Source: Salpingoeca rosetta
Taxonomy: Eukaryota; Protista; Choanoflagellata
Assembly: GCA_033442325.1 (NCBI GenBank)
Contig: JAWQFM010000005.1
Span: 805,429 to 869,428 of the forward strand
Direction: 5' to 3'
DNA length: 64,000 nt
Within the stretch, counting starts at the first letter, position 1. Each line of letters begins with the position of its first letter. Under the pieces are notes generated by a model. It made no database searches, had not been told where the DNA came from, and was given only the letters and a program-made list of their open reading frames with translations. The translations under genes and the position numbers were made by a program. Below, piece by piece: positions 10,067-13,000 of the stretch.

Positions 10067-13000
10067 TCAGAACGCAGTTTGCTGCACTGGAGCGCGACGG
10101 CTGCGGATCTGTGAGCGCACACGCACACACACACACATGCGAAGACGTGCATGTGAAGAGCGGAGAGAAAGGGGAAGCAAAGGGGGGAGAGGATGGCGGT
10201 GAGAATGCAGCAGGGGGGAAGGTGAGCAGGGTTGGACGACAGCAGGAGCATACAACATGGAGCACACTTCCCACACACAAACATCCAACAATGCACGCCA
10301 CATCAAGACCACAAGACGACAAGCCGACAAGCAGCAGCAGCAGCACCACCACCACCACTCAGCAGCACTCAGCAGCAGCAAGGCTCGACTAATCCACGCC
10401 CATCATGCGTGTGCCGTACCTTTGCCAGCCAGCGGGCCGCGGCCCAGCGCACGGCCCTGTCCGGGTCGATGCGGTGGCGCTTCCGCCGCTGGTTCTCCAG
10501 CACCTGTTGCAGAATACGGAGGGCAGACTGCACAGACTCGAGCTGGCTGATCTCCCGCCGAATCACATTGTCAATCGCTTCAATCCGCTGGTGCAAATTC
10601 GCAATCGCCGTCGAGTCCGTGGCCTGCAAGCAACAGACGTACGTGTGTGTGTGTGTGTGTGTGTGTGTGTGTGTGTGTGTGTGTGTGTGTGTGTGTGTGT
10701 GTGTGTGTGTGTGTGTGTGTGTGTGTGTGTGTGTGGTGTGTGGTGTGTGTGTGTGTGGTGTGTGTGCCGGTGAGTGCAGCTCTGGGTAGCGTGTCTGTTT
10801 CCCCACCACGGGCTTCCCCCGCTGATCTCCTCCTCTAGCCCCCCCCCTCTTCTTCTGCCCCCTGCCTCCGCCTGGCTACCACACCTCTGCGAGCTGGCCC
10901 TGTAGGCGACGCTTCTTGTCGCGAAGGACGCGGAGTGTTTCCCGCCTCTCATCGGCGCGCGCCTTTTGCTCCGCTTGCTCCTTTGCAATTTGCTCCTGTT
11001 GGTTTTGTTGGTGCGAAGTAGCGGCAATTAGAGATTGAGGTTCCAAACCGCATTGCGTGACGTGACTCATTATGCACCACGTGCAACTGATGTGATGATG
11101 GCGACTGACCACCACGCGCGTTCATCGTGGATATCACAGCATGCACCCCGCACACACAAACAATCAAACAAACAAACCAAACGAACAAACAGCACATTGC
11201 ACCTGCTTGCGCTGGGCCGTGACGCGCGGGTGCTCTGGGTGGTGTGTGCCGTCCAAATGGTTGATGTAGAACACAACGCCATCCTCCGTCTCAGCTTCGT
11301 CCCAACCATAAGGCAGCTCGTCGCCCTGCCATCATGCAGTGCAATGACATCAGCACGCGTGTCATGAGAAAGAGTGACATGGCTCTGTTGCGGGCTGCCC
11401 AGTGCCCTCCATCACAGGACTCTGTTGCCTTCCTCCGCTTTCCCGCAACTTGTGCGTCTTTCCCTCTCTCAACGGTCGCTCGTGTCAAGTGCCCACAATT
11501 GCAACATGCCACTCACAACAATATCAACACAGAGACTGCCGCAACTCAAGACATGGCAGCATGGTTCTCTCGTGCAGTGTCGCACTTTCAAAACGCACTT
11601 GTGTTTCCAGAGGATCGTGCTTGCGATACTCGTAGGACCGTGGATCCACCCACGTGGTCACCTTGCTTTCCATATTCTTGAAGTAATGCCTGCATGCACG
11701 CACGCACGAACCAACGAGGAGCCAGGCACCATTAGTCCAATGCACACGCACATGCGTGCAGCCACCTTCAAGCACACACATACAAGAGAGGGCTCACGCA
11801 CACATGTACTCATGTACATACACGTACACATATTCTCTTACACGAACAATTACACACAGACACAGACACACAGACACACAGACACAGACACACGGACACA
11901 GACACGCACACGCACACAAAATAACCTGTTCGTGCGCTTGTCAATCTTCTTCTTCCACGGGGGCGGAAGCGGGCCAACATGCAGGTCGAGGTGCTCTGCG
12001 CGCTCCCAGACGAAGAATCCGTTGTGGGGCAGCGTCTTCACCTTTGCTGGCTCGTTCTTGATCGCTTCCAATCGCGCCTGCCGCTCTGCCTCCTTCTGTG
12101 CACGCCGCGCCTCGGCACGCGCAGCCTACAGAGACAGTGGTGGTGGTGGCGGTGGTGGCGGGTATGTTGGCGATGTGGTAATGGGTGAGGGAGTGAGTTG
12201 GGCAGCGGCAGTGGAGTGGAGGTTGTGAACATGAGGGAATAACAGCAAAGGAAAGGGTTGTAAGGTTGTAGTAGACGACACGCACAAGAATAAAAAAGCC
12301 ACCGTGTGCTCAGGGGTTGGACGAAACCGTGGCACGGTACACACATCTACACGTTGCACGCTGTATGCTACTGCACCTGCTTCTTGACGCGCGTGAGCCA
12401 TTTGCGGTCCTCCTGTTTAGCCGCGTCTTCCTCCTTCAGCTTGTCCATGCGGAGGGTGCATGTCGTGCCACGCGTCTGTGTACAATGAATGTGTGAAAAG
12501 AGGTGGTCAAGGAGTGTGATGAGTTTAGTGTTGGTGTGCGAGAGAGAATGAGCATGAGCAAGAATGAGAAGCAAGTGAGAGGCAAATCACTCACTCAGGA
12601 GCACGTGCATCGCCAGAGAACAGACACGCCGTTCCACACACACACACACATACATACATACACAAACATGCATACGCACACACGCACACACACGCACACG
12701 CACACGCACACGCACACGCACACGCACACGCACACGCACACGCACACGCACACGCACACGCACACGCACACGCACACGCACCTCAGCGATGGTGAGGAAA
12801 TCAGTCACGCGGCGGTCTTGTTTGCGCTTCTCTTGCAACAGGGATGAAAACTTGGTGCGGGCAACATGCGCTTTCACAATCTGTTTGCCACGAACACACA
12901 CACACACACACACACACACACACACACACACACACACACACACACACACACACACACACACACACACACACACACAAACACAAGACGCCATTGCGTGATC

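Follow-up and report, generated by a model that had tools for sequence, protein, structure and literature searches.

A KIBRA/MAGI-like WW tandem in the tail of a choanoflagellate myosin heavy chain

The window (the whole analysed stretch of 64,000 nucleotides of Salpingoeca rosetta contig JAWQFM010000005.1) contains at 10067-12125, on the minus strand, the tail of a real, already annotated S. rosetta myosin heavy chain. Our preferred reading, with a probability of about 0.75, is that this tail belongs to an annotated, choanoflagellate-wide 'myosin III-like' family and carries a rigid WW supramodule of the KIBRA/MAGI2/3 type, related to it by descent. The family would consist of two old subfamilies, A and B, and the ligand of subfamily A, which includes the S. 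rosetta gene, is probably not of the PPxY type. The gene, its domains and the combination of a myosin with WW domains are already known, and the gain is incremental.

The entire coding region occupies 10067..17976 on the minus strand and equals P0164, a public protein of 1020 aa with the name 'myosin heavy chain [Salpingoeca rosetta]'. The NCBI genome record of P0164 is GCA_000188695.1 GL832957.1; a search for contigs encoding P0164 returned this record alone, without a cDNA contig. In tblastn P0164 matches the window in pieces with 95-100% identity from 17973 down to 10414, and the full-length orthologues P0154 and P0099 are collinear with the window from 17940 to 10417. The motor domain (residues 15-675) is distributed over many short exons at 13200..17934 and scores 725.2 bits with Pfam PF00063. 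The neck and the charged helical region (approximately residues 676-816) were placed at 11970..13199 by tblastn of P0164; the neck exon pieces 13229-13128, 12478-12377 and 12125-11925 correspond to residues 666-699, 731-764 and 765-831.

The tail exons A to F, on the same strand, all have GT-AG borders. Together they encode residues 765-1020 of P0164, and each translation is exact and contiguous. Exon A (11926..12125, residues 765-830) encodes the charged helix, the extension preceding WW1 and the N-terminal half of WW1 (LPPPW...KRTN). It ends with two bases of the codon for Arg831, which is split between exons A and B. Exon B (11599..11689, residues 832-861) completes WW1 with its C-terminal half (HYFKN...WVDPR) and covers most of the 15-residue linker. 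Exon C (11203..11325, residues 862-902) contains the end of the linker (GD), WW2 (ELPYGW...EHPR) and the start of a long helix, the equivalent of alpha-C of KIBRA, that continues in exon D (10885..10995, residues 903-939). Exon E (10420..10623, residues 940-1007) encodes a further amphipathic helix, probably a coiled coil, and is collinear with residues 248-315 of the relative P0018. Exon F (10067..10108, residues 1008-1020) encodes the basic C-terminal end of 13 residues and the stop codon, and a similar basic W..K..KR motif is observed at the C-terminus of relatives. The splice junctions were taken from the public gene model and from the collinear relatives. Homology searches were done with the exons singly and then with P0164, which equals the spliced model. 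The tail peptides quoted in the first-pass annotation are all present on the minus strand of the window, and they occur exactly in P0164. The same annotation correctly described WW1 as split over two open reading frame entries (11850..12071 and 11524..11781) and WW2 as missing from the ORF track, where its region is represented only by a 36-aa ORF truncated by its start codon (11164..11274).

In P0164 the Pfam Myosin_head profile (positions 2-679) aligns with residues 15-675 at 725 bits. The WW profile PF00397 scores 50.9 bits in two stretches, WW1 being residues 817-847. Exon B aligns to positions 17-31 of the WW profile, and exon C by itself scores 28.1 bits (Pfam gathering cut-off 26.9). 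No C2 domain was found in P0164 by the Pfam scan. Of the motor motifs, the P-loop is intact as GESGAGKT at 105, switch I as NNNSSRFGK at 155 and switch II as DIFGFE at 383. WW1 has both signature tryptophans (W821 and W844), and WW2 has the first one only (W869), residue 891 being proline. Atypical WW domains, such as WW2 of KIBRA, also lack the second tryptophan. The stretch preceding WW1 is family-specific (consensus NGYxVWxRNEHLTL) and is kept in 53 family members. The hydrophobic residues of exon E have the best period of 3.4, and the hydrophobic periodicity of the tail at period 3.5 is reached with the same power in 37 of 500 shuffles. Judging from the long amphipathic helix alone, the helical tail may pair two heavy chains.

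This architecture, a myosin head with a WW pair, is shared by both choanoflagellate orders: it was seen in at least 14 species, for the most part in complete transcript ORFs, and thus the fusion of the motor with the WW domains is real. The carriers include S. rosetta, Microstomoeca, Choanoeca flexa and Monosiga brevicollis (two copies in each of the latter two), Salpingoeca punica, S. macrocollata, Hartaetosiga, Barroeca, Acanthoeca, Savillea, Diaphanoeca and Acanthoecidae sp. 10tr. The assignment of the WW pair and the myosin head to one gene, made in the first pass, is borne out by the public gene model, by the collinear full-length orthologues and by transcript ORFs of many choanoflagellates. 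It is hardly credible that the gene model wrongly joins a myosin gene to a separate downstream gene of a WW protein, as these ORFs run complete from head to tail, the neck, the charged helix and the stretch preceding WW1 are collinear with relatives without a break, and between the parts there is neither a start codon nor a promoter-sized gap. When the tail of P0047 was used as a word-search query, four relatives only were returned, and the WW2 exon had no 100% self match in the large search.

The nearest named motors outside the family are 'myosin-IIIb-like' proteins with SH2, MH2 or kinase domains. In a quick tree, built without other myosin classes, the WW myosins form a clade adjoining these proteins. 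The gene fits the choanoflagellate 'myosin III-like' group, the class assignment resting on the survey of Sebe-Pedros et al. (PMC3942036), where WW-bearing myosins of the choanoflagellate 'myosin III-like' expansion were catalogued in 2014. The relevant passages of that survey give the domain combination only, and mention neither a KIBRA/MAGI-type tandem, nor two subfamilies, nor altered pocket residues. No description of this specific build, a myosin with a KIBRA/MAGI-type tandem, was found in the literature. Class IV and class XXI myosins (the latter in heterokonts and haptophytes) also combine a head and WW domains in one polypeptide. However, as far as the passages of PMC3942036 describe them, class IV (WW plus MyTH4) and class XXI (mixed tails) are other motor classes from other taxa than the S. 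rosetta gene. No KIBRA-type tandem is reported in these two classes, which were compared by description only.

When the family profile was compared with solved structures, the best single stretch was KIBRA (56.9 bits, gapless over 70 residues), the alignment spanning the end of WW1, the linker, WW2 and the following helix. MAGI2 was second with 52.9 bits. When the S. rosetta WW loci and the matches outside the family from the large search were compared, an S. rosetta KIBRA-like locus on C18 came first (63.9 bits, gapless over 81 residues). The distance from DPR at the end of WW1 to ELP at the start of WW2 is 15 residues in P0164, in mouse KIBRA and in the S. rosetta KIBRA-like gene, 14 residues in MAGI2 and 28 residues in YAP; in some members of the myosin family it is 17-18 residues.

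If the WW2 exon only is considered, the ranking differs: YAP scores 44 bits in total (24.0 for its WW2), WWOX-like domains 26-31 bits and KIBRA 18.7-19.2 bits per domain, and NEDD4-type domains too score above KIBRA. This would be expected of an ordinary WW pair of the NEDD4, YAP or WWOX type, resembling KIBRA by chance or convergence, and the hhalign probabilities, exceeding 98% for all tandem profiles, point the same way. However, ranking by WW2 alone favours multi-WW proteins and canonical domains and is misleading for the KIBRA question, and the hhalign probabilities are high throughout because WW domains are all alike. The hhalign scores were 149.8 for MYOA-KIB and 168.4 for MYOB-KIB, and 93-146 for the control sets (WWOX, NEDD4-like and others); next to the 149.8 of KIBRA, the control tandems gave 93-110. 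The length and sequence of the linker, the helix that follows WW2 and the way in which the domains are oriented to each other are three separate lines leading to KIBRA and MAGI.

The S. rosetta tail was modelled by AlphaFold2 with pLDDT 91.2. The stretch preceding WW1 is modelled as strands and a short helix (pLDDT 80-91), and model residues 115-162, corresponding to protein residues 894-941, form a single helix with pLDDT of about 94. Superposition of this predicted model on solved structures gave KIBRA WW12 (6jjy_A) as the best match, with Z 11.2 and rmsd 2.3 A over 128 residues, followed by MAGI2 (6kkg_A; Z 8.9, rmsd 2.2 A over 87 residues). The tandem of SAV1 came next, with Z 5.4 and rmsd 10 A, and the tandems of YAP, ITCH, SAV1 and SMURF2 can be superposed on the models at rmsd 9-15 A only. 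The predicted helix after WW2 superposes on alpha-C of KIBRA up to KIBRA residue 131. Foldseek with the model of the relative P0018 produced the same ranking. The KIBRA-like tandem proposed in the first pass is consistent with these predictions.

KIBRA, MAGI2 and MAGI3 have been grouped as one type of WW supramodule (Lin et al. 2019, PMC6744271). Its features are a short conserved linker, a helix after WW2 that packs on the linker, and the coupling residues Ile35, Phe47, Leu57 and Trp88 (PMC6744271). The myosin tail has a linker of the KIBRA length and, in the prediction, a helix directly after WW2 and the same mutual orientation of the domains. As for the coupling residues, position 35, a hydrophobic position after the second tryptophan of WW1, is Val or Ile in 53/53 family members, with Tyr or Phe at position 57. 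Most family members have Leu, Val, Met or Phe at position 88 (Trp in KIBRA), where S. rosetta has Ala. Phe47, the linker residue stabilising the supramodule, aligns with Pro in the myosins. We suggest that the two WW domains, the linker and the following helix would form one rigid unit like WW12 of KIBRA and MAGI2/3.

The tandem tree was constructed from WW cores only (67 columns, linker and helix left out) and did not include MAGI. In this tree the myosin tandems are monophyletic (98/94) and cluster with KIBRA and two small groups (92/90, no star); the NEDD4-like and WWOX groups are apart from this cluster. KIBRA and the myosins lie side by side in a polytomy, and their sister status is unproven. 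The nearest unnamed tandems (P0040, P0125 and the C32 locus) have Pfam WW domains only. The tree comparison proposed in the first-pass annotation places the myosin tandems with KIBRA, MAGI being absent. An ordinary NEDD4, YAP or WWOX pair is largely refuted by the predicted orientation, the linker, the helix and the core tree, and is improbable. In the whole-protein tree, subfamily A is a clade (SH-aLRT 100), and 13 of the 14 subfamily B rows form another clade together with P0197 (96).

The claim of a KIBRA/WWC-like module needs to be restated. The profiles, the core tree and the AlphaFold2 model agree with a closely coupled tandem of the KIBRA/MAGI type, but KIBRA itself is inseparable from the MAGI class. 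It is possible, with appreciable though minority weight, that the myosin tandem has a common origin with MAGI, or with an ancestor from which both KIBRA and MAGI came, and then 'KIBRA-like' would be too narrow. The difference between KIBRA and MAGI2 is only 4 bits and approximately 2 Z units, with equal rmsd, and is due in part to the greater length of the helix in the KIBRA crystals. MAGI2 shares the exact start of WW2 (ELPYGW) and the linker end E-C-x-x-x-ELP with the myosins, and both the single supramodule type of Lin et al. and the polytomy of the core tree are compatible with such an origin. On the other hand, the alignment with KIBRA is gapless, whereas MAGI2 needs a one-residue gap. 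The best match in the S. rosetta genome is the KIBRA-like gene, both for the subfamily A profile and for the subfamily B tails, whereas the S. rosetta MAGI-like WW-PDZ exon (C12) is a weak match. Finally, what comes after WW2 is, as in KIBRA, a long region of helical or coiled structure and no PDZ domain.

Several features are common to the myosin tandem and WW12 of KIBRA (WWC1; PDB 6J68, 6JJW, 6JJY; PMC6744271). In addition to the spacing and the position 35 residue, these are a similar linker end, E-C-x-G/D-D/E-E-L-P-aromatic-G-W, the helix directly after WW2 followed by a helical or coiled region, and the predicted orientation (rmsd 2.0-2.3 A, Z 10.5-11.2). However, the myosin module is C-terminal to a motor, whereas that of KIBRA is N-terminal in a C2-domain scaffold. 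The myosin lacks the C2 domain and the aPKC-binding region of KIBRA, and has the conserved extension before WW1 in excess of it. WW12 of MAGI2 and MAGI3 (PDB 6KKG, 6JJZ) matches the myosin model with Z 8.8-8.9 and rmsd 2.2-2.4 A, and MAGI WW2 also lacks the second tryptophan (Phe). The MAGI tandem is located between GuK and PDZ domains, with no coiled coil after it. The tandems of WWOX and SAV1 are likewise short-linker pairs, and their second domain is atypical and on its own unable to bind PPxY; however, the WWOX linker has 10 residues, the hhalign scores of WWOX and SAV1 are 93-116, both are outside the KIBRA-myosin cluster in the tree, and SAV1 differs from the myosin model by rmsd of about 10 A.

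The S. rosetta KIBRA-like gene (G000:C18:233626-233940) resembles the myosin in its WW1 (DKRT...YF...TTSWVDPR) and in the coiled region behind WW2, but it has no motor and carries Leu at the position of the second WW2 tryptophan. Its orthology to KIBRA is debated, since the Pfam C2 domain is absent in its full-length choanoflagellate relatives; according to the preprint 10.1101/620633, there is no such orthologue. The myosin was also considered as an orthologue of the WWC family, and this was ruled out: it has no C2 domain, its tandem follows a myosin head of 660 residues, and there is a separate KIBRA-like gene on C18.

By position profiles, the myosin family consists of subfamily A (37 sequences, including the S. 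rosetta gene) and subfamily B (16 sequences). We take the ligand-pocket residues to be those of the YAP WW-PPxY complexes. The position of the second tryptophan of WW2 is occupied by Trp in 16/16 sequences of subfamily B. In subfamily A it is Lys or Arg in 32/37 sequences and Pro (Pro891) in S. rosetta, whereas KIBRA has Ile or Leu. The absence of this tryptophan had been taken for a KIBRA trait, and this probably does not hold: as all of subfamily B retains Trp and subfamily A carries Lys or Arg, unlike KIBRA, the loss in subfamily A is probably derived, not inherited from KIBRA. The threonine neighbouring the tryptophan site is replaced by His in 37/37 sequences of subfamily A, creating a conserved His/Lys-rich patch. 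In WW1, the position of the class I histidine is Thr in 29/37 sequences of subfamily A and Met in S. rosetta, and a position usually occupied by Leu, Ile or Val is Lys. Both the WW1 histidine position and the residue next to the WW2 tryptophan site are replaced relative to KIBRA. The aromatic residue of the XP groove and both tryptophans of WW1 are retained. In S. rosetta itself, the tandem seems to have disappeared from the subfamily B copy.

From the sequences, subfamily B with its canonical PPxY-type pockets seems to be, of the two, the likelier reader of PY pairs at close spacing, and the ligand of subfamily A is probably not a classical PPxY pair. The transport of PPxY proteins of the Warts or AMOT type by a Hippo-pathway scaffold fused to a motor, suggested in the first pass, is unproven and, for the S. 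rosetta gene, doubtful, because pocket positions are changed in both WW domains; the example of the collar microvilli, given there as well, is speculative. A search of the S. rosetta genome for PPxYxxPPxY stretches by DNA pattern gave three matches, compared to four and four in the reversed control, which is the chance level, and the three contexts are unconvincing. The subfamily A tandem may have ceased to read PPxY at all, being a structural or dimerising element or binding a different kind of ligand; we put this slightly under even odds. The pocket replacements of subfamily A are conserved, not random, in both WW domains. Further, where the sources treat these domains, WW2 of WWOX is described as unable to bind PPxY (PMC9293652), and the WW tandem of SAV1 as dimerising (PMC7494017). 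However, WW2 of KIBRA, also devoid of the second tryptophan, contacts a PY motif within the tandem (PMC6744271), and subfamily A keeps the XP-groove aromatic residue and both WW1 tryptophans.

We return to the preferred reading, a KIBRA/MAGI-type supramodule acquired by descent. The protein runs from an intact motor through a short neck, the charged helix, the extension preceding WW1, the WW pair with its 15-residue spacing and the long helix to the basic C-terminus. Descent is the most likely source of the tandem; domain shuffling with a KIBRA-like gene ahead of the choanoflagellate radiation is one conceivable route. The tandem would be the cargo- or adaptor-binding end of the motor. A bolder suggestion, which we consider speculative and rather unlikely, is that an ancestral choanoflagellate united a high-affinity tandem of the KIBRA/MAGI type with an actin motor, and that the family is a motorised reader of paired PY-type motifs, by which Hippo or polarity proteins with tandem PY motifs, or membrane proteins with paired PxY motifs, would be moved or tethered along actin, both pockets of subfamily A having been re-tooled later for a new ligand class, with the conserved His/Lys-rich patch in WW2.

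The rigid WW pair of KIBRA and MAGI has a very high affinity for partners with two close PY motifs, some of which are proteins of the Hippo pathway or of polarity; the supramodule binds a pair of PY motifs spaced by two residues with nanomolar affinity (PMC6744271). Knockouts of Hippo-pathway genes in S. rosetta have a rosette-size phenotype (preprint 10.1101/2024.07.13.603360). As genetic manipulation of S. rosetta is now feasible, tagging or deletion of the tail and pull-downs with the recombinant tandem are practical. Subfamilies A, with altered pockets, and B, with canonical ones, provide a natural comparison for changes of WW specificity. The same module on a myosin of the closest relatives of animals would be its third protein context, and suggests that the module was a movable unit before animals arose.

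The tail peptides on which the first-pass annotation was based were all located on the minus strand of the window. The GT-AG borders worked out from the sequence define six tail exons, exA (12125..11926), exB (11689..11599), exC (11325..11203), exD (10995..10885), exE (10623..10420) and exF (10108..10067). When the exons were searched one by one, exC alone gave a WW domain above the Pfam cut-off (28.1 vs 26.9 bits) and exB a partial WW match (profile positions 17-31). A full-length relative, used as query in a word search, recovered the public protein P0164, NCBI 'myosin heavy chain [Salpingoeca rosetta]' (1020 aa; GCA_000188695.1, scaffold GL832957.1; precomputed Pfam PF00063 and PF00397), which was used in the later analyses. 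Each exon translation is found exact and unbroken inside P0164 (exA to exF: residues 765-830, 832-861, 862-902, 903-939, 940-1007 and 1008-1020, residue 831 being a split codon), and the remainder of the protein maps to the window at 95-100% identity, up to position 17973. Pfam assigns Myosin_head to residues 15-675 (725 bits) and WW to two stretches (50.9 bits); the P-loop, switch I and switch II of the motor are all intact. Thus, the proposed WW-tandem myosin tail exists, and the gene and its architecture are already known.

The introns are filled with long (GT)n/(CA)n microsatellites (10640-10760 and many others, e.g. 12600-12780 and 15870-16060), and these repeats explain why the ORF list holds so many Cys-Val and His-Thr pseudo-ORFs. 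The upstream neighbour, on the same minus strand from position 19466 onwards, encodes a Brr2/SNRNP200-type spliceosomal helicase of 2166 aa (DEAD, Helicase_C, Sec63, WHD_SNRNP200); the gap between the end of this gene and the annotated myosin start is about 150 bases. At 855-2942, minus strand, lies a single open frame of 695 aa with several very long poly-Gln runs and a coiled-coil-like C-terminal part.

The motor-WW fusion is conserved in choanoflagellates. An exhaustive search with the WW2 exon gave a set of single-stretch matches (58-80% identity), which also match exA and exB and, when long, bear a full myosin head; a later word search added about 40 proteins with PF00063 and PF00397. The named Craspedida are S. 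rosetta, Microstomoeca roanoka, Choanoeca flexa (two proteins), Monosiga brevicollis (two), Salpingoeca punica, S. macrocollata, Hartaetosiga gracilis and Barroeca monosierra, and the named Acanthoecida are Acanthoeca spectabilis, Savillea parva, Diaphanoeca grandis and Acanthoecidae sp. 10tr. Full-length relatives are collinear with the window from 17940 to 10417, and the S. rosetta exons adjoin without gaps on the contiguous relative P0018. Many of these proteins are complete transcript ORFs which, together with the single public protein and the collinear relatives, confirm that the WW pair is fused to the myosin head. Sebe-Pedros et al. 2014 (PMC3942036) describe a choanoflagellate expansion of 'myosin III-like' genes, 18 of them in S. 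rosetta, that includes members with WW domains. Outside the WW-myosin family, the closest motors with a name are annotated 'myosin-IIIb-like' and carry SH2, MH2 or kinase domains.

The tail had been described as a KIBRA/WWC-like module. A profile of the whole tandem built from 18 family members was compared with all PDB chains. The best single stretch was KIBRA (56.9 bits), in an ungapped alignment that starts at the end of WW1, spans the linker and WW2 and reaches into the helix. Second came MAGI2 (52.9 bits, one gap), and the NEDD4L and ITCH pairs scored 41-44 bits with gapped linkers. Profile-profile comparison with KIBRA gave 149.8 and 168.4 for the two subfamilies of WW myosins, A (which contains P0164) and B, against 93-146 for control tandem sets (WWOX-like, NEDD4-like, other). 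Ranking by WW2 alone was set aside: it did not place KIBRA on top, and YAP, WWOX-like and NEDD4-type domains scored higher because they are more canonical.

The tandem tree was built from the two WW cores only (67 columns, MAGI not among the sequences), as inclusion of the linker and helix would presuppose the answer. A single clade holds all the myosin tandems (98/94). It belongs to a 31-row cluster (92/90) that also contains the eight KIBRA-type tandems and two small unnamed groups and is separate from the NEDD4-like and WWOX groups. Therefore, in this tree without MAGI, the myosins do not group with non-KIBRA families. The KIBRA clade includes P0162, a hypothetical protein (401 aa) of the chytrid fungus Synchytrium endobioticum whose KIBRA-type tandem resembles KIBRA in linker type, has Leu at the Trp site of WW2 and is followed by a helix, which hints at an origin of the module before Holozoa. 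A third short-linker WW pair of S. rosetta, outside the window (G000:C32:81712-81954; loci L015, L032, L043; 852-aa open frame), also has a WW2 without the second Trp (TQRNPP). In the tree it joins the unnamed protein P0125 within the cluster that holds KIBRA and the myosins, and WW domains are all that Pfam detects in the 852-aa frame.

Template-free AlphaFold2 models of the nearest contiguous relative (pLDDT 88.7) and of S. rosetta residues 780-945 (pLDDT 91.2) both show a sheet for each WW domain, an ordered linker and a single long helix directly after WW2. With the former, Foldseek placed KIBRA WW12 first (E 4e-7, TM 0.78-0.82) and MAGI2 next, while YAP, ITCH and SMURF tandems superpose only at rmsd 10-15 A. 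In VIA-align the S. rosetta model matched KIBRA 6jjy_A over all 128 residues (Z 11.2, rmsd 2.3 A) and MAGI2 6kkg_A over 87 (Z 8.9, rmsd 2.2 A); SAV1 followed (Z 5.4, rmsd 10 A). The features by which Lin et al. 2019 define the KIBRA/MAGI2/3 supramodule, namely the short, conserved linker, the helix that follows WW2 and the fixed orientation, are all present in the models. Hence profile, core tree and predicted structure favour a KIBRA-like tandem, but MAGI2 is also close, so the original assignment is widened to KIBRA/MAGI-type. A literature search found no paper linking a myosin tail to KIBRA; this identity, like the two-subfamily pattern, seems to be a new but incremental finding.

Among all S. 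rosetta WW loci and all non-family matches, the tandem profile scored best (63.9 bits, 81 residues, gapless) with a KIBRA-like gene outside the window (G000:C18:233626-233940; loci L005, L031, L041), where a WW tandem is followed by a coiled region. The subfamily B tails of other species have the same best match in this genome. Its tandem, 58% identical to vertebrate 'protein KIBRA', is clearly KIBRA-type. Orthology of the whole gene to KIBRA is debatable, as a preprint (10.1101/620633) describes choanoflagellates as lacking a KIBRA orthologue, and Pfam shows no C2 domain in the full-length choanoflagellate relatives P0157 and P0158.

The whole-protein tree recovers subfamily A as a clade (SH-aLRT 100) and almost all members of B as a second one (96); each subfamily occurs in both choanoflagellate orders. 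The 16 sequences of subfamily B (e.g. Hartaetosiga and Monosiga P0201) all retain the second Trp of WW2, and 14 of them also retain the His of WW1. In subfamily A (37 sequences) the WW1 His position holds Thr in 29 (Met in S. rosetta), the WW2 Trp position Lys or Arg in 32 (Pro in S. rosetta), and the Thr two residues ahead of the latter is always replaced by His. Where WW2 usually has Thr-Thr-Trp, the position profile of subfamily A shows His-His-(Lys/Arg)-x-His (11224-11319, minus strand; P0164 residues 889-893), a strictly conserved patch that could be a site for metal, pH sensing or an acidic ligand. The missing Trp had been read as a KIBRA trait. However, KIBRA has Ile or Leu at this site, unlike subfamily A, and subfamily B is canonical; so the loss would most simply be a later change within the myosin family rather than a KIBRA heirloom. 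By the whole-protein tree, the S. rosetta paralogue of subfamily B is P0197 (886 aa; G000:C24:876193-876291, outside the window), whose name, 'myosin X', looks wrong. Its model runs from the neck directly into the post-WW2 coil, bypassing the stretch of about 160 residues in which Barroeca P0199 carries its WW tandem. No B-type tandem was found anywhere in the S. rosetta assembly; it is either lost or within an assembly gap.

The altered positions are presumably pocket-forming, judging from YAP-type WW complexes in general. Classical PPxY binding by the S. rosetta tandem is therefore doubtful, and so is the suggested carriage of PPxY proteins. The S. rosetta genome contains only three exact matches to PPxYxxPPxY, the chance level (G000 C21:931399-931428, L039; C5:370082-370111, L038; C1:204977-205006, L037). 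The first (PPHYPPPPSY) is part of a 322-aa open frame and is closely followed by a lipid-kinase-like stretch. At best, they may be weak ligand leads.

The protein holds an intact motor and a conserved tail with a KIBRA/MAGI-type tandem. The tandem is predicted to be a rigid supramodule followed by a long amphipathic helix (hydrophobic period 3.4). The helix would pair two heavy chains, the WW tandem would be a cargo or adaptor site, and further contacts, with membranes or proteins, may be made by the basic C-terminus. Of the two subfamilies, B is the stronger candidate for binding paired PY motifs, whereas A probably reads something else or plays a structural role.
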